Positions 4,527 to 64,000 of a DNA stretch of 64,000 bases are shown here, piece after piece (within the stretch, counting starts at the first letter, position 1; each line of letters starts with the position of its first letter). Origin of the DNA: Klebsormidium nitens (lineage: Eukaryota; Plantae; Klebsormidiophyceae); contig DF237308.1 of the NCBI GenBank assembly GCA_000708835.1, positions 30,158-94,157 of the forward strand. The letters run 5' to 3'. The translations under genes were made by a program, and so were the position numbers. A model generated the notes under the pieces. That model made no database searches, was not told the DNA's origin, and saw only the letters and a program-made list of their open reading frames with translations.

Positions 4527-7500
4527 TTAGGAAAAGTCGTCCATCATGGACTGCGCTTCCTTGACCGCGTGCAGGCCCGGGCACGTTGCCCTGAACGCGG
4601 CGACGCAGCTGCCTAGGGATAGAGCGGTGTCTGAGGGCCGCTGGTCGCCGTCCATCTCTGCGGCCAGCTCGAACATCTGGTCCACCGTGGCCTCGTTCAG
4701 CCATGCCTGGAACCACAGAAGTTCACGGTTGACAGAAGGAAGGGGACTAACTAAGCTTTCAGATCTCAGATCTGCAAAAGTGCACGTCGTCCAACTTGTT
4801 TAGAAGCCCACAAAGGCGAGAAGGGCTGCAATATCGCAACCAGGCTTTCATCAGTGATACGGGCTCAGAAACTTCTGAGGCGTTTCAAAACGGTCCCGTT
4901 CGACTGAACCTCATCTTGTTCTGGACATCAAAGATTCGGCGGACCCATGCAAATTCTTGGTAAAGCAGGAGAAAATATGTACTGTTTGCGTAAAGGAACT
5001 GTGACTCAGACAGCATTACCTTCTTTGCACAGCGGATACAGGGGGCGCATTCTCACCGGCACGTCGAGCTGCTTAATGGCTTGGTGAAAGCCCTCCCTGG
5101 TAACCCCCGGCGCGTCGCCCTCCTTGAACCGGTCCAGCACGGTGTGAACGAGCTCCTCGTCCTTCTCTTGCAGCTGCGAACTTTTGGTCACGAGAAAGCA
5201 CAGCAGCCGATCCAGGGCCACAGGTGCCGCCACGTCACCGCTGACGTCGCCCGCCGCCTGTTCCCCGTTCAGGGGGCTTGGATTGCGCGGTCCCCCCCTC
5301 TGCTGCATCCCCCCTACAGACCCGCTGCTGACCCGGGCAGGCTCCGCACGGTGCGGTGGCCGCCCATTCTGGCGGCTCCCCGCGCGCGAGTGAGCGCCCA
5401 TGGGCGACGCGGCGCGCGTCGCGGCCGCGTTCAGCGACGAATCTTTCTTCGCACTGGGCGACGTCGCGGCTTCGGACCGGCCCGCGAAGGCGGCGTCGTC
5501 GCCCAAGGTCCCCGCGCGGTTCTGCTCGCGCATGTCCGCGAGGACCGCCTCGATCTGCTCGCGCGGCCGGGTTTCCAGAACGCGCGCGACGACGGCTTCC
5601 ACCTGGGCGGGGGTGAGGAGGACGGAGTCCCCGCGCTCTAGTTGGCTCCAGAATGCGGCCTGCCCGTTGAGGGACCACGCACACACTTCCAGGATCTGCA
5701 GCAGGGGCCGAGCAAGGGGCAGAATCAGATTGGATGCGCGGTGGCCCATCTCATGCTCTGACGGTTTCTCGCATCAGGCCTGCCGCCGAAGGCCCATGCT
5801 GCCTACATAGACCACTTGCAAGCGGGTCTACGTAGGCAGGTCTATGTAGACATGGTCCGCTTGCTGCCTACATACACCACTTGCTTAAAGGTTCAGTGAG
5901 CAGCAGCAAACGAACAGCATGCCTTCCGCGTGATCCGATGCATACATGCGACCGCACAACCGGCCCCCCAACACTCCCTCAGCCGGGTCCCCACCTGCAT
6001 GACCGAGTTGACGCCGTGCCCCGGAAGGTCGTCGTAGAGGCCGGTGAGGCGCGTGAAGAGGCCGGCCAGGTGGTCGGTTCGCCGCCGGTAGAAGGCGCGC
6101 AGGGAGGCGAGCATCTCCTGCAGCTTGGCCTGCGCCAGGCTGCGCAGCCCGAACATGTGCTTCAAGTGGCCCACCACCAAGTCGCTCAGCGGCGCGCGGC
6201 CGCGGCCCGCCTTGTCGTCCACCTGCACAGGTTTTACGCGGGGTTTGAGATGCGGCTTCTGCAGTGGTTTTAACTTGTGGCAGGAGTTTGTGGGGAGCGA
6301 GCCAAAAGGAGCGATAGTCGGGCTGTCATCAATGAAGGAGACGGCTGTAGGCTGACTACTCAATAGGCATCCGGGTTGCTTATCAAAATGGAACCTTTTG
6401 AGCTCTTCTGTAGCTCGTTTTCAACTGTGAGCTTTCGAGAAGAGTTTCGACTTCTGGCCCGGAAGGCCGCTTCGGTCGCTTCCATTGAAGCCTGCAAGCG
6501 GAGGTATAGCGTCTGTGTCGGATACATGTGCGAACAGAGCAGGGACAAAGCTTAGGGTTGATCGTCCCCTCTTTCAAGCTCTCGTTTTGAGAAAATAAGA
6601 GCAGTCAGCTCCGCGAGAAAATCTCACCGCATTCGCCGCCTGCTTTGCCCGGTAGATGCTCCCGATCAGCGCGCGCAGCTTCTTGGCCGGCATCACCCGG
6701 GCGTTGTTCACCAGGAACGTGCTCAGGTCTTTCCCCCGGCGCGCCCCCTTCAACACCAGCTCCGCTCGTCCACTCACCGTGGCAGCCTTCCCGCCCTCCG
6801 AAGCTCGCTGCTCTAGTTCCCGTGCGTCGAGCATCTCCGCGCGTTTCCCGTGCGGGCTCTCCGACCGCCTTCCGTGCTGGCTGCTTGCCCGGTGAACTGC
6901 CCCGGCCGCGCCGCCGTTTTTGGGGCTTTCTTCTTCCTTCTCCTCCTCACCCACACTCGCGCCGGGCGCCCCCTCTTCGATGAACCGCTCCCAGGCGGGG
7001 GGGATGTGCATCCGTTTGGAGAACTCAAGCGGCGCCAGCCCCTTCGCTTCCCGCCGCTCGTTCACCCTCTGCTTCCACTTGCCCCCCGACTGAAGCGCGC
7101 GCGTTGCCGGCATCAGCCCGTTCTCCCCTGTCACCTTCTCGTCGTCCGACTCCATTTCCAGGCGTGTCGCTTCGTCTTCTCCGTCTTCTTGCACGGACGT
7201 TCCTACCTCCCGGGAGCTCGGCCTGCGTTCCTGCGCCGGTCTCTGCCACCGTTTCCGCCCGGCGCGCTCCCACCGGGCACTGCCGGGGCCGGAGACGGTG
7301 ACCCGGGCAGTCTGATCACCGAGTAAGACCGCCTCCGTCTGGCCCTCCAGGCGCAGTACGACTGAGAACTCCTGCTCCCCTTCTCCAAACTCGTCCTCCA
7401 GCAGCTGCACCCAGATCGACTGAGGGCCGACCGCGCCTTCCGGCCACGTCAGCAGGCCCTCTGTCGACGCGAAGTCGAGCCCGGCGTGCGCGGACCTGCG

Positions 7501-15844: not shown

Positions 15845-18800
15845 TCAAGGTTGCAGCAAAAACTTGAATATGTCTGTTAGTGTGATTATCCCCTCGACTC
15901 GCCTACTACCTGCTTCTACGCAAACGATCCTCCGAACACCTGCAGAACATGGTGTAAGAATTTAAAAGACTCAATGACCAGAGACATCTGCCTGTGTGCA
16001 CGGCTCCAAAAGCTATTTGCTTTCTGATGACACGTATTACAGGCTGGGTGGGTTTCTCGTGACTAGAGGTCTCAGCAGAACGAAATCACGAGTTCGATAT
16101 CTGCAGAACACATTTTCGGACTTGTGACATCCTTCCAACCCATCACCAGCTGTATCAGGAATTCAACACTTGAACTCATGGATGACGGCAAATCAGGACA
16201 ATTGTAAACACCAAGAAATCTCACCTGGAATCGTCAGTTTTTCTACTACGGTCCGTAATGAGTCGGAACGGAGGCAGATATTGTATCGCTGTCCGATGCC
16301 CCCCCCAGCTCCACCCCCAAGCCCGCTGGTGTCTTGGTTTCGATACGAGAGAGCCTGCAGAGCACAATAAGGTTTGAACACCGCACACCGCACATCGTAG
16401 AGGCGAGAAAAGGCTACTGCACCGGGGCTTTTCCTACATCTAAAGCCGCCTACTTCGTGTGTTACATTCAAAAGCAGAAACGAAGGCCCATCCACAGACA
16501 GCCCCTGCTAAGGTCCTGGATAGATGGCATAACCAAGGTCGAGCTGACTATACCACGTGGGAAAAAGACGGAGGTTATACGAACCTCCTACTGAAGCCAA
16601 CTTCTGAGAGATTCAAGGTGCTCCTTGCAGCTTTCATGAGTCGGGGGTAGATTTTAGCGCGCACGCTATTTTCAACCCTCACCTCTTTTAGCGTCAGATC
16701 TTGCAGTTGCCGCCGTGTGTAGATTCGGTCACGAGCAAGTGACGTGATGTCGTTGCGGGCATAAACGTCTACCAACGCACCATTATCGTCAACTACAGGC
16801 AGTGCGCTGACATCAACTGCAACCCGAGACAACAAGATTAGGACTAACCAGCTAAGAAAGCCCATCGTCAACAAAATCTCCGGCTTGCTTGTTGTGCTCG
16901 ATGGGGTGAAGTGCGTTGAATTCATCGAAAAAGGGCTGGCTAATTCCCGATCGCGTTCACAACAGCCGTATGTACTTCCGTAATTGCTTTGCAAGCTCAA
17001 TCAAGCACCATTGAACGCTCCAATTGACTAGGACCTTTTACTCGGTAGCAGCAACTCTGGTCGAGCATCTTCAGTGCAAGAAACGCAAGGCCGAAGCAAA
17101 CTTCAAAGTCATCCTGCAAAGAAACGTCCCACGAGGGGTGTCTTGCATTGGAAAACTTCATGTCGCGTCAGGCTGTGCAGGCAGGACGCAACGCTCACCC
17201 GCCAGCAGGGCGTCTAGGGCCTGGTTCAAGCGGTCCCGCTCCCGCACTACGCACAGCTGGCGGAGACCGGGACGACCAGTGTCCGCTGCACAACAAGCGC
17301 CACGCCCCTGGTGACCATTGATGGTAGAGCACGGAACCAATTGTGGGTGGTGCTGAGCTCAGCAGGGTTAGCAATGTTGAGGCGACAGCACGACACCATT
17401 GCATACAAGAAGCATGGCGCTGGAGATCGTTCTGGAGTTCGCAAAAGCTTTTGAAGGCAACTAACAACACTGAGCGTCTCCAAAACCGCAACTAGAAAGA
17501 AAGCAATCCATCACGCACCTGCCCAGGTTCCCAGCGGCAGGGCAGCCAAAGGGTGGTTGAAGAGGGGGAGAGAGTTGGGAACGTGGCGGAAATGCCGTCC
17601 TATACCTGCACACGATAGCGGGCCAATTGAGCGTGATATGGGAAAGGGCTGACAACCTGGAAACATGAAGACGTTACGCTTGGAATGGTCAAGCGAACTG
17701 TGGATCATCAACCAAGAAGACGCTCTCGTCAAGCCTTGCGAGCTTTCGCAAGCCGACCCAAGCAACAGCTTATAGACGCGCCTAACATTGCTTCCATCGC
17801 ATTGAAAAAACCTCTAGATGGCCGCCTATCGGACGCCAGCGAACAGAGTTAGTGCTTTGCTAACAAAGTAACCTTCCATAATGCGGCCGTTTGTTTCTCA
17901 ATTTCACAAGCCTCGACTGCCCTCAGACATCCGACACAACCAGAGCCTTCCAATCATGAAGCTCTTTGAGCAACAGGAGTTCAGCAGGCAGAACTTTATG
18001 ATGGTGCCCTCACATTTGAGCACCCCCGAGAGGGACGCCAGGTGCAGCAGCTGCTGGCAGCCGCCCTCCTGCTGGCTGGCCCACGCCAACACGGGCAAGG
18101 TCGCAACGCCTGCTTCCAACAGCTTGTCCGCCAACTTGCGCAAGCTCTCATCCGGCTCCACCGACACCAGCGCCGGCCGGCTCTGGTCTCTCGCCCCCGC
18201 CTGCGCCTGCGCCGCCGCTTTCTCCTCTTTCCACGCTGCAATCGTGTGCGTCTCGAGCTCCTCTTCACTCAGCACTGCCCCCGTGCTGTTGATCTGGCGC
18301 AGGATGGTGATGAAGTCGCTCGCGCTGAGCATGCCCACAAACTGCTGCGACTCAACGTCCCAGAGTGGGGCTGACGGAACCGCCTGCTCGTAGAGCGCAT
18401 GGAAGGCCTGCTTCACAGGCAGGGTCACGTCCAGCGCCACCACCTTCCCGCTCTCCGGTAGCAATTCGTACACCGTGTGCCGGTTCAAGAAGTCCGCGAC
18501 CCGCTGCTTTGTCGCGTCTGCATCGCTTAGGCCCCCTACCGGGGTGTCCGACGGGATGGACACCGCTCTTTCTAGCCCAGGCGCGGCGGCATCATTTGCC
18601 ACGGGCTGGAAGTGCGAGCTGGAGCTCGGCGGCAAGGCAGCGTCTGGCTGCGGCAGGGGGGCCTGCGGTTCCTGCGCTAAGGGGGGATGGGCAGGGCCCT
18701 GCTGGTGGGGGTGCTGTGGTGGGAGGGGCTGTTGCGGAATATNNNNNNNNNNNNNNNNNNNNNNNNNNNNNNNNNNNNNNNNNNNNNNNNNNNNNNNNNN

Positions 18801-20553
18801 NNNNNNNNNNNNNNNNNNNNNNNNNNNNNNNNNNNNNNNNNNNNNNNNNNNNNNNNNNNNNNNNNNNNNNNNNNNNNNNNNNNNNNNNNNNNNNNNNNNN
18901 NNNNNNNNNNNNNNNNNNNNNNNNNNNNNNNNNNNNNNNNNNNNNNNNNNNNNNNNNNNNNNNNNNNNNNNNNNNNNNNNNNNNNNNNNNNNNNNNNNNN
19001 NNNNNNNNNNNNNNNNNNNNNNNNNNNNNNNNNNNNNNNNNNNNNNNNNNNNNNNNNNNNNNNNNNNNNNNNNNNNNNNNNNNNNNNNNNNNNNNNNNNN
19101 NNNNNNNNNNNNNNNNNNNNNNNNNNNNNNNNNNNNNNNNNNNNNNNNNNNNNNNNNNNNNNNNNNNNNNNNNNNNNNNNNNNNNNNNNNNNNNNNNNNN
19201 NNNNNNNNNNNNNNNNNNNNNNNNNNNNNNNNNNNNNNNNNNNNNNNNNNNNNNNNNNNNNNNNNNNNNNNNNNNNNNNNNNNNNNNNNNNNNNNNNNNN
19301 NNNNNNNNNNNNNNNNNNNNNNNNNNNNNNNNNNNNNNNNNNNNNNNNNNNNNTTTGGGGGGCAGCGACTGGTGGGGTGGGGGGTGGAGCTGCTGTGGGG
19401 GGGCAACTTCAGCCTCATCCACATCCATACGGACACCCCCTCCTTGCTGGTCAGGCCCCTGCTGGACATGCTGGGCCTGCTGGGGATCAACCGGAAGAGG
19501 CTCCGGCTCTTTCACCAGGAGCAGATTGTTGACGTTGCCGAGGGGGTCACGGATGCTGTGCTGGGCGTCGTCATGGCGCCACTCCCCGTCCACAATGAAC
19601 TTGTACTGCAGAGGAGAGGCCGCAAAGCAGTTCACCATCTGCGCACTACGATCAATACAATCTTCCAAAAGTACTGCTAAGGAAACGCCCAGTCAAGACA
19701 TCCATCAACTTATACCAAGTCAAATGCGTAATGCATGCTGCCGATCGCTGTTTCTGAATGAGCACCACAGCTTGTACGTTAACGGTCAGCACGAAATCCG
19801 GCAAATTGCAAGGTACGCTCCCCGGGGCCACTCACCTGGTGGTAGCCAGGAGGCAGACTACAGACGACAGCGAACCAATTGTGGTGCCCATCTACCGGCG
19901 ACATGGGCAGTGTTTCTCGCCACCTGCACGTACAGACATTTGCTTCGCAACTTCTGCTGACACTCAACCAGTGACCCACTGGCCAGCTTTTGTCACCAAA
20001 TTCTGCCTCGGAAGCACAAACAATCCAAGGGAGGAATGCGAGCAGAAATAACATGCGATGAAATGTGAGGAAAACAGGAGGAGAAACAGGAAAAAGCAAC
20101 AAAAAATGTTAAGAAACCCACTCAAGGCGGCTTGGAAACTGCCAGATGTACAGCCGTGAGCACAAATGCACTGTAAGCGCAACTGACTTGCCCAAAATGC
20201 AGTAAGTGGTCTACGGTCTACGGTCTACGGTCTAAAAAAATGAGCACAGAGCAGTAAGTAAGCTATTGCTGGCAATCTGGACACCAAACAACGAAATGAT
20301 GACACTCTACGCAAAAGTTGAGGCTCGTTCAAGATGGCAAGCACGTCAAACCATTACCAATTGTTCAGTTCCCAAGGCTGCTCCAAGAAGGATACCAATA
20401 TGGCCCACCAAGGTCCTCACATTGAGCTTGAATATAATGACAGAACAGACAGCTCAAGTCTCACCTGGTGAATGAGCCGCACAAGTGAACATGCCTTCCT
20501 CCATAAGGCCACACAAATCTTGTCGGTATGAGGATGGCACCCTCCCCGTACAT
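15845..20553 (-). CDS. SNF4: SnRK1 regulatory beta-gamma subunit (SNF4; CBM48 plus 4 CBS), interrupted by an assembly gap
   Basis: Exon 1 (20553-20465) [30 protein letters not shown]. Later exons give [12 protein letters not shown]...[52 protein letters not shown]...[58 protein letters not shown]. Last exon (15939-15845) [30 protein letters not shown]. Confidence 0.96.
18743..19353. other. Assembly gap (611 N)
   Basis: Run of n; it falls inside the low-complexity Pro/Gln-rich exon of SNF4. Confidence 1.
20208..20234. repeat. Heptamer tandem repeat (GGTCTAC)x~3.9 in SNF4 intron 1
   Basis: ggtctacggtctacggtctacggtcta seen directly. Confidence 0.95.
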
Positions 20554-48691: not shown

Positions 48692-51600
48692 ATGGCTGAT
48701 GTAGAGGCCCCATTGTTTGATCCCCGTGAGGCTGATCATCATGATTGGAATGAAGTGGACGGAAGATTGTCAGAGGGAGAGGAAGATGCGGGAGAGGACG
48801 AGATGGGGTCCAAGGAGGAGGCCGAGCTCAGTAGGAGTCTCTCACAGGTAAAGCAGACAAACTCAAGCCAAGTCTTGTTAGTACCAGGATGAGACGCTTT
48901 GTTGAACAGCTCATGAGTGTTCTTGCTGGTCCGAATTCAAACCCATGTCTTTGTGTGCTACTTGGAGAACCACGCACGGAGTGCCTAATCTATGTGCACA
49001 AGGAAAGTGCCATGTGTTCGAAAGCACTTGCTGTGAGTACACATTGCTCTCGCTCTTGCAAGATATAAGCACCGGCAGGAACAAACCATGTTCTGCGGTA
49101 TATGTGAATCTGAAACACCTCATCCATCATTCAGCATATGTGAAGACAAGCACGGAGGCAAAGATTAAGTTCGTGCAGAAAACCCTCACTATTATCCTCC
49201 TTCTAGTGACTCGCTGGCTTGCAAGAGGCTGCTGGGTACAAACCTCTTGTTTGCGCTGCAGAATGTTGCACTGGACCAGCGGATTGCCCGGGTTCTTGGC
49301 AATCTGGACAAGGTGGTCAAGGATCCCACTAGAGGAGGTGGGCCACTGCCTTTCATAGTTGCTTGGCTGGACGGCATAGACTGAGCTCGCAACATATGAG
49401 GGCTACCTACGCATCAGAGCCTGTGGACGCATTGCTTTGACTCGCAATTGTCAGCATTGTTTTGACTCCTTGCAGACCAATGGTCCGTGACCTTGTTGGT
49501 CGAATCGCACCAGCAGACACTCTCTGGAAGGCACCTCTTCAGTCAGAACAGTGATGGCCATGGATTTCTGTGCAAGTCCAAGTCACATTTGCGCCGTTGC
49601 AGCGAGCTGGCTAGCGAAGCATAAGCCTTGTTCTTGTCTGGTGTCTGCAGGGGTGATGGCCGGTGATTATGGCACCTTCATGCCGGTCCAAGTTCGCGGG
49701 AAGGCCGTTCCGCAGCGCTTTGTTCGGGACACTGGGATTGACATCCCCAGCTTGGGGCCTCCTCTGGACCCTGTGCCCCCGCGAGAGACCCCGCCGCTGG
49801 TGCCATCTGCCCTTCGACCGAAGACGGCCGCAAAGAAGCTGGCGATGCCAGCATCTACGGTGAGTGCCTGGCGATACCAGCATCTACGGTGAGTGCCTTG
49901 AGGCGGGTACCCGAGACGGAGGCCTACAGCATAGGAGCAGCGGAAAGTTTGGCGTTGTTCTTTGTAACTAGATTCGGGAGAGGACAGTTGCTGATGGGGT
50001 TTCCACCACAAATGGACAACTTATCTCTGAGCTTCGATGGCTGCACCAAGCGCAGGTCCTTGGCTGAAACTCCTAGGACTCCGCATGCGCAAGATTTCTG
50101 AGGACATCCGTAACCTCGTGCAGTTGTTGGTGAACGTCGATCCCAGCTTGGCTCCCACCAAGTCAGACGGAGCCTCTAGATCCTCCAAGCCGCGCAAGAC
50201 CAAACCGAGCCAGAATGGTGCCCCCCTAGGCAGCAAGCAGGTAGCATCCCCGTACAAGCTGGGGAGTCTTGGGGCCTCTCCCCTTGGAATTGACTACGTT
50301 TTAGCGAGCGCGGCCCCCGTCTCTCCGCTCCTGAATTCGGGGCCCACGCCGTCAAGCACGGCCTCCACTCCTGAACGAAGCCCCGGATCAATCCTGCGGG
50401 TAAGTGTCAATCGGTCTGTGCTGACCTGGACGTTTCCCTGACTCTTTTCATTACACAGCCCTGCCTCACCTGCCCCCATAGTACCTCCCCAGCATTTGCG
50501 TCTGTGTGTAGCTTTGTTTCTGCGAACTTTGCGTAACTCTTCAAGAATCTTCGGTGGACTGACTGCCCGTGCATAAACCATTGACTTTTGGGCGGAATCC
50601 CTGAGCATCGCTGTTGCTGCAGATCATGACGGCATCCACTCTCCCATATGGGAGCTATGTCTCTCCAATCGGGGACCTTGTTTCGTGGAACCGTATGGCC
50701 CGCTCTAGTCGGCTGGGCTCGGTGCAGGAGCACGAAGGGATTGCGGCGGGTGCCATGGACGCATCTGACGAGGAGCGGGGGCACGACGGCGGAAGGGCTG
50801 GGGTCCACGCAAAGGAGGAAGCCAGGAAGGAACTCTGGGGGGCAGAGAGAAAGGAAAGTTTGGCCAAGAAGAGAGTCAAGGAAACAGAGCTGGGCACGAA
50901 ACCGGACAGAGCGGCAGCACGTGCGGATAAAGAGCCGGCCGCTGCGGCACCGGCCAGCGAGGAGACGTCTGTGTTGGACGGCTTCTTGCTTCCCCAGTCT
51001 GGAGTTGCTGAGCTTGAGAGCTTCCTCCCCATAGAAAAGGAGCGGCTGCCGCGGGTGGGGAAGCGGCAGCTGATGCAGCAGCTGAGCGTGGACCAGGAGC
51101 GGCTCAAGGCGTTCCTGGGGGAGGGGGCCGCAGCGGGGGACCTGCTCCAACGGATCCCCCACGCCAACCTGAAGGAGATTGAGCGGCTGAAGAAGGAGAT
51201 TGAGAGGACGGAGGCGATGCTGAGGCGGAAGCTGGAGGAAGATTCGGACTCGGACTCGTCGTCAAGTAGCGGGGGCGGAGAGAGTTGGGGCGCAAGGGAT
51301 AGGAGTTTGGGCCGGAATGCGGAGGAGCAGGGGGGGGGGAATATGAGCGGGCCTGCTCGAGGGCAGAGTGCGGCAAAGTTCTCGGACCGGAAGGGAGGGC
51401 CGGGCACGGTCAAAATTGATGGAAGGGTTGATGGGAATGCAGAAGGGAGGGGACAGGAGACAAGCAGCAAGGGGAGGGAAGAGAGGAAGCGGCAGGGGGA
51501 GGTGCAGTCTCCGACGTCAAAGAAGGAGAAGCGGCTCCGGCTGATGGAAGAACTGGAAGAAGTGAAGAGAAGGCAGGCGCAGGAGGACAGCAAGGGTCAA

Positions 51601-54600
51601 GCGAAGCCTGCGGGCGAAGCAGCAGGGAAGGATGGGCGAACAGAGAAGAGGAAGAAGGACAGGGATACGAGCATCAGTATGGAAGCAGGAAGCAAGGACC
51701 ACTTAGGAGCTGGGGACAAGGGATCGAAGCAGGGGCGGACCCCAGGGGCAGTGGACCATCCAGAGAAGCTGGGAGTGCGAGAAGGGAAGGGCAGTGAAGA
51801 AGAGCAAAGTAAGAAGAAGAAGAAGATGAAGAAAAAGCTTGCCGGGGTGGAAGTGACAACCACGATCCCCCATGAGAAGGTGACGGAGCGGGACGAGAGC
51901 CAGGATGAGGAGGGGGAGCGGCAGCGGTCGCTGGCGAGGTCTATGAAGAAGAAAAAGATGAAGCAACGTGAGCTGCCGGATGCAGTGGATGAAAAGAGAC
52001 CGAAGAGTGGCGCGGAGGACAAGAGCGGTAAAGGGCGGCTCGCAAAAGAGGCCAGCGGGACCGACGGTGCGCACAGGTCGCGGGCCGTGATGGCGGCTGC
52101 CCGCGAGGCGCTGCCCGAAGCGGACCAGAAGCGGCTGCGTGCGGCGGCGGCCAATGCTAAGCTGGTGCAGCAGGCACAGATGAGCGGGGACGTGGTGGAG
52201 CTAGGCCCGCGGGTGGACCTTGGGGAAGACGAGTACGTGGGGTGCGACAAGTGCGACAAGTGGCGCTTCCTGCCCTACTGGCTGCACACCAAGCAGTTCA
52301 CAAACATCCGTTGGACCTGCGACGATGTCGACTGGCTCGAGTGAGTGCGCCCAACAACACAGAGTCGCTGCCGGCAACTGCGCCGGAGCAAAGAGGGCAG
52401 AGTGCAAACCCCCGAAAACCGCGAGACTGGAGATGAAATCAGCAGTCCTCCTCCATGTCTCCAAGAGCTTGATGGTCTCTGTGCTGCATTTAGGAACCGC
52501 TTGTTTCACTTTCCCTGTATCTACTATCCGTAGTTGCAGAAGCATCCAATGTGCGGTGTCGGCAATGTGCTCCGGAGATGCTCGCATGCCCAAAGCTGCC
52601 TGTCAACGCTGTTAAGGAAGCTGATGCCAATTCTCTGTTTGCAGTGCGGCCTATGTGGGCTGCCATGTTGAAGACAAAGTCTTCGAGTTTCAGACTAAGC
52701 TGATCAACTACCCGCCGCTGGGAGGCTGGGAGAAAGTTGCTGAGGACATCAAGAAGAGAGGCCTCATCCCCAAGCTGCCGCCCGTAGTCGCGTCTCCCAC
52801 AAAACCAAAACGCAGTGCGTTCACTCAACAAGGAGACGCGTCTGCTACGCTGATGCGCACCCAGAGTGCTGATAGGAAGAAGGATGTCCGCGGGGGGCCA
52901 CTGGATGGGGTCGCTGGGAGCCCCCTGGGGCAAAGGAAACGGCTGCTGAAGGAGGGGGAGGCGCGCAGGCAGAAAGGGCAAGCAAAGGGTCGGGGCAGCG
53001 GGGAATCGGAGAGCGGGGGTGAGGAGGGGGGGGCCGGCACCAAGGGGGCCAAGAAGAAGCTCAAGAAGAGGCGGGCCGTGCTCAGCGACGAGGAAGAGAG
53101 CGGAGAGGAGAAAGGAGGGAACGCAGGCAAGGAGCAAAACGTTAGAGCGACTGTAGATGCTCCGCCAGGCAAGGGCAGGGATGAGGAGAAGGCGGGCAGC
53201 GTGGTCGCAGCTGCAGTCGAAGAGGAAGACTGGGTCGTGGAGGACGAACCGGGACGGGAAGAGGAGGCGCTAGCGGGTGGGCCGGAAGAAGACATGGGTG
53301 CGCAACATGGTGCGAAGGCGCAGCCGAACGAGGCGGAGGAACGTGAGCGAGGGGGGCGGGAGGTGGTGCGACCGGGGGCCGGCGAGGAGAGGAGACGAGA
53401 AACAGAGGCGAAACGGAAGCTGGATGAGGAGGACAGGGAGCAGCCGAGGGAGAAGAAGGCGAAGACAGAGGCAGGAACAAGGAACAAGGAGGTTACAGAA
53501 GGGGCGAAGGAATATAGGGAAAGGGACAGGGAAGGGGTTGAGAAGCAGCAGAAGCCGGAGGCGCAAAAGGAGCAGAGAGAGGGGTCAGAGGAGAGGGCTT
53601 TCAAGAAAAAGTTGAAGAAAGGCAAGAGGTTGGCAGAAACCATGGACGGCAAAACATTAAACGCTCCTACCCCGCCAGAGGTAAGCACGACAGCGGCAGG
53701 GGACAAGGTTAAGGTCAACGATAGAGGAGATGGAGACAGAAAGGGCGAGGCTGAGGGGCGGGAGACGAAGAGACGAAAAACAGAGGGGAAAGACGAAAAG
53801 CAGGGTGAAAGGGAAAAGGAGGGGGGTTACAGAATCGATCTTTCTGGGGGGCTCGGTGCCCCGGCGGAAGCTAAGGGGGAGGCTGAATCAAAAGCTAAGG
53901 GGGAGGCTGAATCAAAAGCTAAAGGGGAGGCTGAAATCCAAGGAGGGACTGATGTCACGGGGGAGACGGTACCGGAGGTCGTGCAGACTAAAGAGCGGGG
54001 CAGTGAAAGAGGGACAGAGCCGGTGTTGAAAGTGAAGGGCGCGGACGTAGATAAGCTGGAAGGGTTGAGTACTGAGGGGGCGGGAAGAAGAGAGGCCGGC
54101 ACGACTGGGGTAGAAAAGAGCAGTGAGAAGCGGCATCAACCAGAGGGAATGGGGGGAGGAAGGGCGGAAGAGACCACGGGAACGGAGAAGAGAGCTGATA
54201 CGCAAGCGGGCGTGGGGCTAGTAGCAGAAAGAAAAGAGGTGACAGCACCGGCGGGAGGGGAGCACCCCTTCTTGGAAGAGGACGCGGACGCGGACAAGGA
54301 GCGGAAGTCTGAAGCGGCAGGAGCTGCGGCGAGTCTGTCGCGACTCAACAGCTTGGTGCCGAGACAGGTGCAAGTGGCCAGCCGGAAGGTCGTCCCTAAG
54401 GACGAAGAGAGGGGCGACAAAGGGGCAGAAAAGGCCGAACCGAGTAGAAGTGAGAGAACGGCAACGGAGGTGGAGAAAGATGGACCTACGAGCGTCGATG
54501 TCAAAGCGGCACCCGGCGAGTTGAAGAAGGAAGAAACCGCACCGGATGCAAAGAGCGCTGCGTCTGGTAGTCGACGAGTTGCTGCGGAAGCGAGGGCGGC

Positions 54601-57472
54601 GCCGGTTCCCCCGGTCGAGAAAGCCGCTGTTGAGGCGGACGTGCGAGCACCTGCGAAGGCGAAGCGGGCTGAGCTGTCGGACAGCACGTCCTCCTCGGAC
54701 GTGTCGTCATCCGACGTGTCGTCGGACGGGTCGGAGCTGGCGGAAGAGGACGTGGTGCAGCCCGCCAAGGGGGGGCGGAGCGCCAGGGCGAGGGGCAGAG
54801 ATGAGCCGGGGGCGGACCCCCCCAATCCAGCGCGCAGCACGGTCTTGCAGGTGTCGCCCCCCACTCGGCGAGGGCCCAGCCCTCTGCGGCTGGGCCGAAG
54901 GGCGCCCTCGGAGGACCGCGACAGCCCTCCCCCGAGCAGAACGGAGTGGCGGGAGCGCGACAGACGGGACGACAGGGACCGGGACAGGGGGTACCGGAGT
55001 GAGAGGCGGCGCAGCCCGGGGCGGCGATGGGGGGAGCGAGAGAGGGAACGGAGCAGATACTATGACGACAGGGGTCGCGGCAGGGACTACGATCGCGACT
55101 ACGAGCGGGATCAGGACAGAAGAGGGGGGTACCGCAGGGGGGAGTCGCCCCCGTGGCGGGACCGGAGGGGCGGCAGCGAGCGGTTGGAGCATGACAGGCG
55201 GCGGGACGGGCGAGACGACGACCGGCTCTCTGCGGGGGACCGGTCGCGGTCGCGCTCTCTCGGCAAGGAGGGGGCCTTGACCAGGCGGGACGGGCGGGGG
55301 AGCAGCCGCCAGCTGTCGCCGCTGCCCGAGGCAGGCTCCGGCAAAGACGCGGCCGTGCAGAAGAAGGAGGTGCCGCCCGCGGCGGAGAAGCCGCCCAGCG
55401 TTGAGAGCCGGGCCAAGGGGCCGCTCGCCAGGGTGCTGCCTGAGGTGGGGGGGCCGGGAAGTGCGCGGAGTACCCCCCCGGTGGAGATGACCGCGTCGAC
55501 GCCGCCCCACGTGGGGGGGTCCAGTTCCACGCCGGCCCCGGTGGTGAAGGCGGCCAGCGAGTCGAGCCGCATGGCCGGTGCCATGGCGCCGCCCCCGCCT
55601 CCGGCCGCGGCAGGCGGGGCGCTGGACGAGGCGCACCGCGTGTTTGGGAAGCGGATGAAGGAGGCCAAGGACACCAAGCACGCCGCGGATAAGCTCAAGG
55701 TGAGCGGGCAGCAGCGCAGGGGCTCGCGGTCGGGGCAGCGGCCACGGGATTGGCTTGGTCACCGGCTCAGTGGATGTCCTGGGGGCCGAACGCTGCAACC
55801 TTCTTATGAACTTGAGGCGCGTACTGAGGTGTTGGATGAATAGAATAAGGATAAGTGGGCACAGCAAAAACGTCTTCGCTACATCTGAGCGCGGTTAAAA
55901 CTAGCTCAAAGCGGACTCCGCCGGGGCTTCCCCTTCTAACAGAAAACTAGCGTCTTCTCAGCACCAGTGCAGACTTCGTTTTCTTTTTGATGTGCGCATC
56001 TCGTTGCTTCGTCGGTCGTTAGCTCAGCAAGCGCGTCTCTCACATTGTGTGTGATCATGTTCCTTCTAATGCACCCGCTATCTGTTATTCATCTACCTGC
56101 TCTGTGTCGTTGGACCTTTGATATCTCGTCATTTCCGTTGCGGTCGTCGCCTGCTGTCGGTCCCTGCCTCCCCATTCCCTTCTGACGTGTCTTTGCGTCG
56201 CTGCCTGGTGCAGGAGCAGGGGCAGGCCATTGCTGCCATGGTGTACCTGGATGCGGCACTCAAGTTTCTGCTGGCGGCCTCCTCCATCGAGGTGTTCGAT
56301 GCCAAGCAGGCCTCGTCCATCTACCGAGAGACCGCGGCCTACCTCGAGTAAGGGACCAAGGACTGACGGCTTGTGGTCTGCCCGTACCGCTGACTTGACG
56401 AACATCTCAACGAGATCCACCTGGATGTGCGGGCCACCCCCAGATCTGTGCAAATGAGGATCGTTGCAACGGCGATCCATCCGCTGTCGGCACTATCCCG
56501 CTTGCTCTAACGCGCACGGACATTGCTTGTAGACGGCTTCAAATGTTGCACGCCATCTTCTTCATGAAATCAAATGAGTTAGACCCCAGAAAAGTGGAAG
56601 TACGCGCAGCGGATCACAAAGAGCGTGCTCTCACCTTCTTCCCGTCCTGTTTTGGTGGCAGGGGCCTGTGCGTGGGTTCCTTCAGCTCCAACCAGGACCT
56701 GGCCGGCGAGGCGCTGGCGTGGCAGTGCAGCGCCGTGGCGCGCACGCGCGCTCTGCAGGCCGTCAAGGACCGCGCGCTCAAAGACCGGGCCGCGCTGCAC
56801 GAAGGCCTCATCCTGACGGCCCCCACCGGGGCACCTGGAGCCGGGCCCCGGCCCCCGTCAGCAGGGGCACCGGCCACTGCTCTGAACCCGGGGAATGCAC
56901 ACCCAGGAGTGGTGGGCACGCCGCCGGGCACGATTGGTAAGTGGTTCCTTGCCCTAAGTGCTGCAGTTACGGCTGTGGGCGTCTGCGGTGGGCACATGTT
57001 TAACAGAGACCGAAGCAAGGGTTGAACGGTTCGCATGAAGCGCGCCGGGCTGTTTTGGCCAGCGCCTGAGGTGGCCGACCACAGGTACACAAATGTCGGT
57101 CTGTGTGCGGTAGTGTACCTGCGTTGTGGCTGCCTGCTAACCGCGTCCGCATCTGAAGAGTGCTCTGCCGCTTCGACAGCCGGGTCGCCGTCCTCATCGT
57201 CCGCATCGGATGCGGACGCGGCCTCCCAGGCCGCTCTGTCGCTGGGGCCGCACCAGCGCGAGCCGCTGGGCCACATGCTGCACATCGTGCACGAGCACTT
57301 CAAGATCACGGCCTGCTGGGCCCAGGCAGCCAACCTCGCGGGCCAGGCAGCCAAAACGCTGGGGTCCGACGCGCTTAGCGCGCTGAACGCGGTGGGGGAA
57401 AATGGGGGGGTGGGAAGCTTGGATAGCATTGTCCAAGCAGTGCGCATTGCCCTAGATAAGTTTGGCGCTTAG
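48692..57472 (+). CDS. Plant CW-type zinc finger protein (CWZF3/5/7-like), large and mostly disordered
   Basis: N-terminal ALDQRIARVLG...GDYGTFMP and SPGSILR|IMT...SPIGDL blocks. CW finger CDKCDKWRFLP...WTC...W...C split by intron 52341-52644. C-terminal helical block KEAKDTKHAADKLK...YLDAALKFLLAAS...IYRETA...ALAWQC...VQAVRIALDKFGA*, as in plant CWZF proteins. Confidence 0.88.
49840..49897 (+). repeat. 29-bp tandem duplication spanning a 5' splice site
   Basis: TGGCGATGCCAGCATCTACG|GTGAGTGCC (49840-49868) followed by TGGCGATACCAGCATCTACG|GTGAGTGCC (49869-49897), 1 mismatch. Confidence 0.95.
53868..53935 (+). repeat. Coding 24-bp minisatellite x~2.8 (KAKGEAES)
   Basis: aagctaagggggaggctgaatcaa at 53868 and 53892, partial at 53916. 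Confidence 0.9.
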
Positions 57473-59319: not shown

Positions 59320-62300
59320 CTACGTATCCGTTCTAAGGCTCACCTTTTTCCCCGTCAACTGGAATTTTGAGTTCTTCGTGGCCTGCAAATGCCCCAGAGT
59401 GAGCGTCAGACTCCTCTTAGAGCATGCAACATCTCTACAAAAAAAAGAGCTGTGCCAAGTACGTGTGATGTGAGTCGAAATGCAGACCGGAAGAGACTTT
59501 AGCTGCCAACAACGATAGAGCCCAGGACTCTTTCCTTTCCTGCTCATTTTACTTGCGTAATTAAACTTCGACACGAACAGCCTCACAGGGTCACGGCACT
59601 TCGAAGCACTAGAGGGGCACCAACATCACCGTTAGCACACTAGGGTCCCACGTCGACTCACTTGCACCAAAATCTGCTCTTGGAGAGCCTTTGTGGACAC
59701 CTCTATTGCGAGAGTCGCTTGCGATTGCACGCTTTGCAGAAGGCTTTTGAGGCTTAGAGTGTGCTTGTCGGCCTGCAGGTGGGAGACAGCAGAGGCTCGA
59801 AGATGATCTGGCTCAAAACAGTTCCAGCTCTGAGTTGCTCGCTTTTGTCCATGACCGCCCAAGTATCCTTATACATTGACGAGCTTTCTTTTCAGTCTGC
59901 TCCTGCACCATACCGCAGCACCTCGAGTCCTCCACAAACCACGATCCAAGATTGATATCAACAAAGGTGTCAATCTGCACTGAGCTTTCTTCGAGTCTCT
60001 TGTGAATCATGCGTCATCCAATCGAGAGGCACTCAGCAGGCCAGCATAACAAAAGTTTAACCTTCACCTGACCACCGTCAGGTACAGAGTTCGGCCCTCC
60101 ACACGACAGGAAGGGAAAACACATGCCCCTCACCTCTTGCAGGGCAGCTTGCATCATCTTCCGAAGCTTCCCCGGCTTGATCGCAGCAGCTGCAGCATCC
60201 CCTGCATCGACTGTCGAAGCCACAGCGCTTTCATTCGCAGCCCTTTTAATCTTCTTCACTGTTGTTTCACTGGCCCCAATCGCTCCTCCCGAAAGTGTGC
60301 CCACGCCACCGTCCACTTCGCGTTCCTTCTTTCCTTTCTTTCGCGCGCTTTTACCCCCCTCATCGACGTCCGTAGCTATCTTTTCCCCCCTTCTCTTTTT
60401 GCTCTCTTTTCGAGGGGGCTCGTCTACACCGTTCGAAGGCTCGCCCTGCATCTCGTTTGCCCCATGAGTTTCCGGCCCCTCCCTGTCTCCGACCGCAGGA
60501 GAGTCCGCCTGCTTCTTCTTCCTACCCTTCTCCGCCAGCTCCTCCCAGTACTGCTTTTCGTCCAGCACTTTACCCGCCTTGCCGTTTTTCGCCTTCGCTT
60601 CCGATTTCCCGTTCTGCTTGTCGTTCTGTCCGTTCTGCACAGAACTTGTTTCCTTGTCCGCCGTTACATGTTCAAGTGAGCCATTCTCGGGTGGTTTGGA
60701 TGCAGCATCAGAGGAACCCGCGCCCTTCTTCTCCTTCTTGCTCTTCTTTTTAGCTACAGTGCTTGAGTCTTTGACGACAGCCGGGTGAGTGTTGCTCTCC
60801 TCTGCTAATCCGCTCTCCTTAACTTTCTCAGGGGCCTCCTCTTCGACGCCCTCATTTAGACTCATCACTTCCTCGCCTTTGCGTTTCTTGCCCTTCTTCG
60901 TTTCCTTCTTCAACCTGGCTTGTCCGTCAGCATCTCCCGCTTCCGCGACTGTCTCTTTTTCTGCCTCCTGCATAACACCTGGAATGTCTTCCTTTTGCTG
61001 CTTCCCCTTCTTCCGCTTCTTCCCAACCTCAGCAGTGACTTCATGCTGCAAATCATCCGCCCCAACATCTCCCTTTCTCCTTTTCTTCTCCCCACTCCCC
61101 TTGCCGTCTGCCTGCGAATTCCCGCCCATGCTTGCCTTCCCCTCCGCTTCTGCAACCCCCCCCTTTGCCGCAGTCCCGGTCACAGCTCCGTCATGCTCAT
61201 CCCCGTTTTCCGATTTACCCCCCTTGTTCTCCCCAGTCGAAGCAGCCCCAACAACCCCCTCTGTGGGCACCTCCTTTTCTGCCTGGGCCTTGGCGGCTGC
61301 CCTGGCCTTGGCCCGGTGCTTCTTCCCCTGAGCATGCCCCTGGAGCGTCTCTTCGCTGGTGCACTTGACTCTGCAGAGGGTACACTCCCAGGGTGGCCGT
61401 GTCGACAGGCCAATCGTTAGCTCCAGGTTCTCCCCCCCCTTTGCAGGGTTCTCCTTTGAGCCAGCGCTGGGGTTTGCGAGAGCCTGGCGGAAGGCGTCCC
61501 TGGGCCCATATCGCACCTGCACAATAAGCATTGGGACACGTCGGGGCATGTCACAAGAAAAGTTCGATTGGTGATACCAGGGGTAAGGAAGGTCCTCTGT
61601 CCAACTGGTTGAAAACATCTGGCATGACCTTTTCCTCCAGGAAGAGTGCATCAAATGACCCTTGCTAATGACCCTCTGCTTATGGTGGTAATAAGTTGAC
61701 ACAACGTGCGGATGGTGGTATGAAGTCAACAGACCACGCTTAGGGTGGTGATGAGTTGGATAGACAAACAGCTGATGGTGGTAATAACTTGAACAAATTG
61801 ACACATCAAATTGACAGTGGTGACAACTTAACTGCTCATGGTCGTAAGTGATAAGAACAGGGGGCCAGAAGTTACGCCGAAGGGAGAACGCAGACGCAAT
61901 ATCTAACCTGACATGAAGACTGTTATAACTCTGAAACTCTGAGGAAGAGTGAAGAAAGGTGGGCCACGCTATGCTGGGCATGTTGCTGTGAATAACTCAG
62001 GACACCAAATAATCTTGAAAAACTTTCTGTGGATTAACAAGGTTTGCCTTTCAACTTAGCCCCAGGAAGACCTTTACCGATCACATTGCCAACCAGGTGG
62101 ATATGACATCAGTGTGAAAGCAGGAATACAACGTGCCCCAGTCGACTTACCTCTTCAGTTACACACGAAGTGTGCCCCTGCACAGACTGGCGGTCAAACA
62201 CCACCCCACAATCGATACAAGACAGCTGCACACGGAAAATCACATCATCAAACAATCAAAGAGCAAATGGCAACACCTTACAGGGAAACAGAGCATTTGA

Positions 62301-62596
62301 TGTCCTCACAATGTGGAAAAGGGTGCCACCACCGGTGCATCCGACAACGTTGCCAAAATGACAACCAGGCATTGCTGCGAAGCAAGGTCATTTACAACAC
62401 CTGCACGTAGGCTTTGAGATCCTGCCCTCCATAGGAATTATTCCAAGATGGTAAAAGCACAAGCAGGGGGTTTCGCCCGGATTGGAACAATGTGGGAACA
62501 ATAACTTACTTTTCGCGCTGCGCATTGTTGAAAGTGGCTCTGTAGTTTCGGTTTCTTAAGGTTATCACCACAGCTTTCACATTGAAACCACACCAT
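59320..62596 (-). CDS. LYAR: LYAR-type C2HC zinc-finger nucleolar protein with a second C2H2 (U1/matrin-like) finger and a K/E-rich tail; 5 exons
   Basis: Exons 62596-62510 ([25 protein letters not shown]), 62225-62151 ([25 protein letters not shown]), 61516-60134 (VRYGP...[28 protein letters not shown]), then [12 protein letters not shown]...QILVQ and [20 protein letters not shown]. Confidence 0.93.
61682..61812. repeat. Degenerate ~30-33-bp tandem repeat in LYAR intron 2
   Basis: Four units begin (AT/AG)GGTGGT: ATGGTGGTAATAAGTTG, ATGGTGGTATGAAGTC, AGGGTGGTGATGAGTTG, ATGGTGGTAATAACTTG. Confidence 0.7.
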
Positions 62597-62812
62597 TGTC
62601 ACCAACAAATGGCTCGTCGCCTTCAAGTTGACCACCAACCAATTTTCAAATGGAGTGCTAGTAGCTCAGACTCAGATCTTCCAAGTTCCCATGCACTGAT
62701 GCAGATAAGGTACAATATACGGTAGATCAGGACCGCAAAAATACTGTGTTTGAAAGTCACTTGGTCTACTTTAATATACGGTACTTATCTTGCTCTCACC
62801 CCTCCATCATCT

Positions 62813-63022
62813 GGTCAGATGGCCGAGCGGTCTGTTACTTGAAGGCGCCAGCTTCAGGTGTTGCGGGAATCTGCTGGTCTTCGAGAAAGGGCTTACGTTT
62901 GAAATGTTTTCCGCCGTCGATTAGAGTCGGATGCCTGTATTTTCGCGATCGTGTCCATCCGTTAGCGATTTGCCGATCGGACGGCGCCGGCGACAGGGAC
63001 GGTTCTTACAGATGGTTTTTTT
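62813..63022 (+). ncRNA. tRNA-Leu(CAG)-headed Pol III-like unit, copy 1 (with 8-nt and 13-nt insertions)
   Basis: GGTCAGA TGGCCGAGCGGTCT[gttacttg]AAGGCG CCAGC TTCAGG[tgttgcgggaatc]T GCTGG, then a variable-arm-like segment, B-box-like GTTTGAAAT (62897-62905), ~110-nt body and T7 (63016-63022). No canonical T-arm or acceptor 3' strand. Confidence 0.6.
63016..63022 (+). terminator. Probable Pol III T-run terminator (T7)
   Basis: TTTTTTT exactly where similarity between the two copies ends. Confidence 0.55.
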
Positions 63023-63055
63023 AGCGATATTTTATTTGAAGGCTGCCGCCTCATC

Positions 63056-63243
63056 GGTCAGATGGCCGAGCGGTCTAAGGCGCCAGCTTCAGGAGACTGG
63101 TCGTCGAGAGAGGCCTTCCGTTTGAAATGTTCTCCGCCGTCGATTAGAGTCGGATGCCTGTATCCCGCGATCGTGTCCATCCGTTAGCGATTTGCCGATC
63201 GGACGGCGCCTACGATAGGGACGGCTCTTCCTGATGGTTTTTT
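63056..63243 (+). ncRNA. tRNA-Leu(CAG)-headed Pol III-like unit, copy 2
   Basis: GGTCAGATGGCCGAGCGGTCTAAGGCGCCAGCTTCAGGAGACTGG (A-box/D-arm and anticodon arm, CAG at 63090-63092), B-box-like GTTTGAAAT (63120-63128), a body nearly identical to copy 1, and T6 (63238-63243). Period 243 bp. Confidence 0.65.
63238..63243 (+). terminator. Probable Pol III T-run terminator (T6)
   Basis: TTTTTT closing copy 2. Confidence 0.55.
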
Positions 63244-63297
63244 GATGATTGATATATGAAAAGAGTGAGGCGAAGCCGAGGGTTGGGGTGGTTGAGC

Positions 63298-63482
63298 CAA
63301 TCACAGTCAAGACAGTCGATGACTCTTTCAACCGTGAGTGGCTCGGACAAGTCATCGGACGGTACACGTGAGCAACCGTCTTGACTCTGATTGCACCACG
63401 CTGGCAACTGTCTTCACTGTGGATGGCTTACTGTACCATCTCAAACCCGACCGTCAGATCAGCCCGGGTCTGCATCTGACGG
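63298..63482. repeat. Cluster of inverted repeats (hairpins)
   Basis: CAATCACAGTCAAGAC (63298-63313) / GTCTTGACTCTGATTG (63378-63393), 15/16 paired, inner CGATGAC/GTCATCG. Also CCGTCAGAT (63451-63459) / ATCTGACGG (63474-63482) perfect, and GATGG/CCATC (63422-63440). Confidence 0.85.
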
Positions 63483-64000
63483 CCCGAATGTGCAAGATCT
63501 TCTGGCACCTGTAAGTTCAGTCACGATTTGAAAATTGCCACGCTGGCATGGCTGCCGCTAGACTTAACTCCTGAGCTCGCGCCTCAGGTTGGTTCGCTGC
63601 ACCTGCAAAGCCTCTTGCCGCAACACAAGAACCAGGATGAGAGGTATGCCATATGGTCATTGAAGAGAAGGGCAAGAGAATGACAAGCCTATCAGTCTTC
63701 TGCCAGCGCAAGCGGGAGGCAAGCGGAGCGCAAGCAGGGCGCAAGCATGGCCCTTAAAGCGAGAGTGTTGAGAGAGCAGCTGTTTGAGCAGTCTGATTAC
63801 TGAGTGCAGAGCCGCAATATGTCAGACATACAAGCCAAAGGTAAGTCGAGATTTGGTAGAGAAATTGTGTCTATCATGGCGAGTCTCTTTTGTCATGACG
63901 CTGGCAGCTTTGAGGGTTGCCGTTCCGTCATCAGGATGGAAACTACTCTGAATGTTGGCCCTGGCATTAACAGCAGCAGTAGTACAGCAGAGATGGATTT

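Follow-up and report, generated by a model that had tools for sequence, protein, structure and literature searches.

The window analysed here is a 64-kb stretch of Klebsormidium nitens scaffold DF237308.1, and the end of the scaffold coincides with window position 64000. An ORF at 60014-61981 on the minus strand shows 100% identity to K. nitens KFL_003590150, the protein of which carries zf-LYAR and zf-met domains. The first exon of this LYAR-type zinc-finger gene lies at 62438..62596 on the minus strand and is divergent from two related RNA-type units, copy 1 and copy 2, on the plus strand. The LYAR ATG is at 62596 (minus strand), 211 bp from copy 1, which is the nearer of the two copies. An earlier sequence-only reading had described the units as standing head-to-head with LYAR at about 220 bp, and the divergent arrangement holds, with 211 bp as the measured distance. 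Elsewhere in the window, positions 49320-57472 are GC-rich (0.59-0.67) with strong positive GC and AT skew, and contain a 1062-aa open frame that is without a Pfam match by itself and sits within a gene annotated at 2063 aa, which has zinc-finger domains of the CW type (PF07496 weak, PF24756). Positions 17904-19960 hold several long open frames (281-531 aa) overlapping on both strands at a GC content of 0.43, a pattern that is unusual for the window and could represent a repeat or mobile element.

Copy 1 as a whole unit runs from TCATC to a T7 run (63016-63022) and occupies 62807-63022, and copy 2 runs from TCATC to a T6 run (63238-63243) and occupies 63051-63243; both are on the plus strand and were delimited with MAFFT, a repeat finder and nhmmer. 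The copies are direct repeats, 244 nt apart from start to start, and share about 91-92% identity, with 14 mismatches over 193 aligned columns in the MAFFT alignment and four indels of 1, 8, about 12 and 1 nt. Their likeness begins at TCATC and stops at the T7/T6 run. The 28-nt spacer between them (63023..63050, plus strand) is unrelated to either outer flank, giving no match to the flank upstream of copy 1 (shuffle p = 0.21) or downstream of copy 2 (p = 0.34), and no target-site duplication is visible around either copy. A tandem pair with this start, these terminal T runs, an unrelated spacer and no target-site duplications had been proposed, and each of these points was confirmed at the positions given above. 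The repeat finder, short-word blastn and nhmmer detected only these two copies in the 64-kb window. The scaffold ends 757 bp past copy 2, and the count of tandem copies covers the sequence up to the scaffold end only.

Each copy begins with a head derived from tRNA-Leu(CAG). The head of copy 1 (62813..62896, plus strand) was defined by alignment to the minus strand of L002, a contig of a related alga (4859-4961; blastn 79% over 91 nt), and consists of a 5' acceptor strand, the A box TGGCCGAGCGG, a D arm, the anticodon CAG (62855-62857) and a variable arm, together with an intron-like insert of 13-14 nt at 62859-62872. The D loop of copy 1 contains 8 extra nt, GTTACTTG (about 62834-62841), compared with copy 2 and with the tRNA of the relative, and these may represent an intron-like insert of a non-canonical type or no more than a simple insertion. 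The head of copy 2 (63056..63119, plus strand; from sequence reading and alignment) has a normal D arm and the anticodon CAG at 63090-63092. Its intron is almost wholly missing, leaving an anticodon loop of 8 nt with C-A as the last stem pair, and the loss did not produce a clean splice junction, as CAGGAGACTGG is found in place of the expected CAGGTGCTGG. The Rfam tRNA model (RF00005) did not match either K. nitens copy even at E <= 10, and ARAGORN, with introns allowed and at default stringency, called no tRNA in them. Relaxing the ARAGORN threshold returned models with implausible 51-91-nt "introns", which were rejected. The K. nitens copies are not tRNAs. The intron of this locus is consistent with a 2026 review in which ~34% of K. 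nitens tRNA genes are intron-bearing (PMC13578239).

Two relatives of the LYAR protein were traced to contigs, and the contig L002, a JGI metagenome contig, represents a related alga. Contigs L001 and L003 stop before the position of interest, and the comparison below rests on L002. In L002, an intact tRNA-Leu(CAG) gene lies ~300 bp upstream of LYAR exon 1 on the opposite strand, the same position and orientation relative to LYAR as the units in K. nitens. The acceptor stem of this gene is paired, its T-arm GTGGGTTCAAATCCCAC is normal and its intron measures 19 nt; it is recognised both by ARAGORN -i and by the Rfam tRNA model (48.9 bits, E = 1.2e-9, against a threshold of 29). The K. nitens head was matched to L002 4859-4966 by blastn and nhmmer. 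Both K. nitens copies are unchanged relative to the L002 tRNA from G1 to the anticodon loop (37/37), in agreement with the tRNA-Leu(CAG)-like head claimed from the sequence. Copy 1 also matches 19/20 positions of the L002 variable arm, and its intron, shorter than that of L002, can still be aligned with it. The first ~60 nt of the L002 tRNA are kept almost unchanged in K. nitens, and the likeness collapses past the variable arm. MAFFT sets the motif GTTTGAAAT under the L002 T loop and suggests that GTTTGAAATGTTCTCCGCC is what is left of the T-arm and acceptor; when this region was aligned locally with the tRNA, the match was within chance (p = 0.6), and the suggestion was rejected. The T-arm and 3' acceptor strand, described as missing in the sequence-only reading, are functionally gone.

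Short palindromes of G runs and C runs flank the tRNA-Leu gene in L002 at 4670-4760 and 5040-5150 (e.g., GGGGGGGCTCCGCCCCCCCC and GGGGGGCCGCAGGCCCCCCCC), and look like members of a family of small dispersed inverted-repeat elements. The region downstream of copy 2 shared no neighbour gene with the L002 locus in tblastx and blastn comparisons.

We conclude on the basis of sequence comparison that the K. nitens locus is orthologous to a real tRNA-Leu(CAG) gene, and that the pair arose in place from it. Such an origin argues against the locus as a SINE insertion, even if the locus could be the founder of a SINE family. A dispersed tRNA-Leu-derived SINE family, represented here by two retroposed copies or by a master locus and a nearby retrocopy, would explain the layout of tRNA head, unique body and T-run tail. 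Copying through RNA would also be expected to make the limits of the copies coincide with those of the transcript, and could account for the absence of most of the intron from copy 2. Set against these points are the intact tRNA-Leu at the same place in the relative, the lack of target-site duplications, and the junction in copy 2, where CAGGAGACTGG is not what clean splicing would leave. Searches with the unit and the body in loci L001-L006 (57 kb; nhmmer and blastn) returned no further copy, as in the 64-kb window. We consider a SINE family improbable here.

The confinement of the likeness to the stretch from start to terminator, together with a spacer unrelated to the flanks, fits a unit defined by its transcript. 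As a neutral DNA duplication this pattern would be hard to explain; it is compatible with selection, with gene conversion restricted to the unit and with copying through an RNA. The 14 mismatches fall in clusters: three blocks of 43, 31 and 45 columns are identical and the remaining columns differ by ~20%, and a permutation test on the three longest identical runs gave p = 0.03. These identical blocks and the perfect 5' head could owe their preservation to gene conversion, either between the copies or from intact tRNA-Leu paralogues, instead of to selection.

Beyond the head, each unit contains a body of ~110 nt, at 62906..63015 in copy 1 (alignment of the copies, blastn and nhmmer) and at 63129..63237 in copy 2 (alignment of the copies), both on the plus strand, and identical blocks of 31 nt and 45 nt are common to the two bodies. 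The body had not been recognised as a known RNA when read from sequence, and no Rfam family matches it: Rfam 15 gave 0 matches at gathering score over the whole window, and at E <= 10 within 62700-63300 only two chance-level matches. SRP, U6, RNase P/MRP, snoRNA and hammerhead RNAs were rejected on the same searches (gathering score and E <= 10). A presumed resemblance of TGCCTGTA.TCCC and TGCCGATCGG to 7SL was dropped, as the Rfam SRP models give it no support. Plant-type telomerase RNA, a Pol III product, is driven by a type-3 promoter. It was also rejected, TAAAA occurring in neither copy and the promoter being internal and tRNA-type, not USE plus TATA; the template would have to be complementary to the Klebsormidium telomere repeat, CCCTAAAA or CCTAAAA (PMC8287931), and none is present. 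A 20-mer from the invariant block of the body had two matches among JGI metagenome contigs, each limited to the 20 nt and attributable to chance. Two 92-aa frames that cross the units had no counterpart among predicted proteins by exact look-up or word-index search, which would have revealed spurious reading frames predicted on related DNA or RNA-seq contigs; K. nitens is represented there via its annotated proteins only, so that this negative result carries little weight. A weak likeness to tRNA-Leu positions 10-50 (p about 0.04) was seen in the 3' half of the body, and the body may have come from a partial internal duplication of the tRNA. A second degenerate tRNA was tried as an identity for the body; a tRNA-sized element closed by GCCGTC/GACGGC has the support of no detector and is a bare possibility. 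We found no description of such a unit in the literature on Klebsormidium.

Plant tRNA-snoRNA genes and herpesvirus tRNA-miRNA units are precedents for dicistronic precursors, in which the head would serve as an RNase P/RNase Z handle to release the ~110-nt body as a snoRNA-like or miRNA-like RNA. The placement of head and body under one Pol III-type terminator would suit this arrangement, as would, circumstantially, the adjoining gene for a nucleolar protein. We regard it as very improbable: the acceptor stem and T-arm needed by RNase P and RNase Z are absent, no Rfam snoRNA or miRNA model matches above noise, and the body is not a clean hairpin. There is likewise no conserved C/D or H/ACA box pair. 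A C/D snoRNA, alone or in a tRNA-snoRNA dicistron, was rejected on the defective tRNA part, the lack of a C box (RUGAUGA), and the presence of CUGA, near the 3' end, in copy 2 only. The best snoRNA match reached 14.7 bits, compared with a gathering score of 50, and is located outside the unit.

The signals for Pol III transcription are partly preserved. The A box TGGCCGAGCGG fits the pattern of Pol III type-2 genes, TRGCNNAGTGG, and is identical in both copies and the L002 orthologue. A B-box-like motif, GTTTGAAAT, was read from the sequence at 62897..62905 in copy 1 and 63120..63128 in copy 2 (plus strand). Compared with GGTTCGANTCC, which has C56, CGTTTGAAATG keeps GTT.GAA and has T at the C56 position; C56 of the B box is near-invariant and normally critical for TFIIIC binding. 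A TATA-like octamer, ATATTTTA, is present in the spacer at 63027-63034, corresponding to -29 to -22 of the tRNA-like 5' end of copy 2, and the same octamer is found at -30 to -23 of the L002 tRNA-Leu (L002 4991-4984). In copy 1, TTTAATATA lies further upstream, at -43 to -35. TATA-like elements at such a distance are known upstream elements of plant tRNA genes. Terminator-type T runs (at least four T) end both copies, T7 in copy 1 and T6 in copy 2. The earlier description of the units as Pol III-like therefore stands with regard to the A box, the terminal T run and the upstream TATA-like element, and is qualified by a B box that has T in place of C56. Internal T4 runs at 62907-62910 and 62940-62943 occur in the copy 1 body and are absent in copy 2. 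Judging from all these signals, copy 2 looks like the better transcription unit of the two.

The units had also been described as structured. Of the complementary segments named, all are present: CGCCGTC at 63135-41 with GACGGCG at 63202-08, CGGATG at 63151-56 with CATCCG, which lies at 63177-82 and not 63178-83, CCTGT with ACAGG (copy 1) or ATAGG (copy 2), and, between the leader and the 3' end, CATCTG/CAGATG in copy 1 and CATCGG/CTGATG in copy 2. The folding energies do not bear the description out, as MFE z scores of -1.05 to +0.68 for units and bodies against dinucleotide shuffles are no better than those of shuffled sequence. RNAalifold moreover folds the body differently, into a long irregular hairpin with the pairs GCCGUC/GAUGGU, AGAGUCG/CGG(U/C)UCU and CCUGU/A(C/U)AGG. 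The two main body helices of the sequence-only reading show no covariation because the copies do not differ in them, and whichever fold is taken, a G-C pair that becomes G.U through a change on one side accounts for most differences. Double changes preserve pairing at two places, namely the variable arm (U.G to G-C) and the stem that joins leader and 3' end, where copy 1 has U-A and copy 2 has G.U. The claim that the differences between the copies keep pairing thus extends to one or two double changes, and two sequences can give no more than a hint of covariation. CATC in the leader can pair with CAGATGG of the tRNA itself as well, a feature also seen in the functional L002 gene (CCATC...GATGG), so that part of the end-pairing may go back to the tRNA gene. 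The case for a structured, functional RNA is weak.

The failure of both copies in every tRNA test, the lack of excess folding stability and the absence of body relatives in the data searched are what would be expected of two dead tRNA-Leu pseudogenes, in which a rearrangement destroyed the 3' third, tandem duplication and decay followed, and gene conversion maintained the identity blocks. The indels in the D loop and anticodon loop, the internal T4 runs of copy 1 and the degenerate B box also look like decay. Neutral tandem duplicates, however, should share flanking sequence as well, and here the likeness stops exactly at start and terminator. The T run and intact A box in both copies, the copy 2 octamer that is the same as that of the functional orthologue, and the clustering of the mismatches (p = 0.03) also count against decay. 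A decaying pseudogene pair is a serious possibility, nearly as likely as the reading we prefer.

The reading we tentatively prefer, at a little short of an even chance, is a lineage-specific, tRNA-derived and still-transcribed Pol III-type unit, comparable to BC1 or a proto-SINE and proposed from the sequence features set out above. The ancestral state was an intron-containing tRNA-Leu(CAG) gene upstream of LYAR and divergent from it, as still found in the relative. In the K. nitens lineage, everything past the variable arm was replaced or lost, including the T-arm, the 3' acceptor strand and the original terminator, and a transcript would now reach ~110 nt further, to the T6-T7 run. A later duplication copied the unit exactly; one limit is TCATC, the presumed start, 5-6 nt ahead of the 5' end of the tRNA, and the other is the terminator. 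As the body is common to both copies, remodelling preceded this duplication. RNA polymerase III may still transcribe at least copy 2, from the intact A box together with the TATA-like element near -25, perhaps helped by the weakened B-box-like motif. The predicted product is an RNA of ~190-215 nt with its 5' leader and U-tail still in place, since RNase P and RNase Z would find no substrate in an RNA that lacks acceptor stem and T-arm. It would consist of D-arm and anticodon-arm hairpins plus the 3' domain, with ends that may pair (7 bp between leader and 3' end). Such a product would rank with rodent BC1 or a proto-SINE as a tRNA-derived small RNA of recent origin, confined to its lineage. 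A stronger proposal, which we consider unlikely, is that the tRNA-Leu gene was converted in place to a new, selected small RNA, its 5' two-thirds serving as promoter and scaffold for a new 3' domain, and then duplicated.

By the time a tRNA-derived Pol III RNA, for example BC1 or a SINE founder, is recognised, it is usually old and its source gene is beyond tracing. The present syntenic locus allows a comparison of both states, the intact tRNA-Leu in the relative and, in K. nitens, the unit that was remodelled and duplicated. Should this unit prove to be transcribed, it would offer a dated and simple model, in the streptophyte lineage, for the passage from a tRNA gene to a new small-RNA gene or SINE founder. 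If conversion in place is true, a Pol III ncRNA gene would have been caught soon after its origin, with the unconverted ancestral state persisting in a related alga. If the unit is not transcribed, the locus would be an ordinary, neatly bounded pair of tRNA pseudogenes.

Rodent BC1, which is derived from tRNA-Ala and is the master of ID SINEs, resembles the K. nitens unit in its tRNA-derived 5' domain with an internal promoter and no cloverleaf, its unique 3' region, its Pol III T-run end and its lineage-specificity. BC1 differs in its origin by retroposition, its single expressed gene and its known neuronal role, whereas the K. nitens unit originated in place at an orthologous tRNA locus, forms a tandem pair and is known from sequence alone. 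SINEs derived from tRNAs, including plant families with T-rich tails, share the layout of head, body and tail and have copy limits that are also the transcript limits; unlike them, the K. nitens unit has no target-site duplications or dispersed copies in the sequence searched, and its locus is orthologous to a real tRNA gene. In yeast RPR1 and SNR52, a tRNA-like leader with A and B boxes directs Pol III to a non-tRNA RNA that lies downstream, as it would in K. nitens. The yeast leader is cut off and what follows is RNase P RNA or a C/D snoRNA, whereas the K. nitens body matches nothing known and the processing signals are missing. Plant dicistronic tRNA-snoRNA genes (Kruszka et al., 2003, as cited in PMC13578239) likewise place a second RNA after a tRNA gene within one Pol III unit, and in the green lineage, but with an intact tRNA that is cut by RNase Z and a C/D snoRNA downstream. 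With ordinary tRNA pseudogenes, the K. nitens copies share the lost cloverleaf, the loop indels and the failure of tRNA detectors. In contrast to such pseudogenes, the pair shows a sharp break after the variable arm followed by a common ~110-nt extension, a likeness bounded by start and terminator, and the retention by both copies of promoter and terminator signals.
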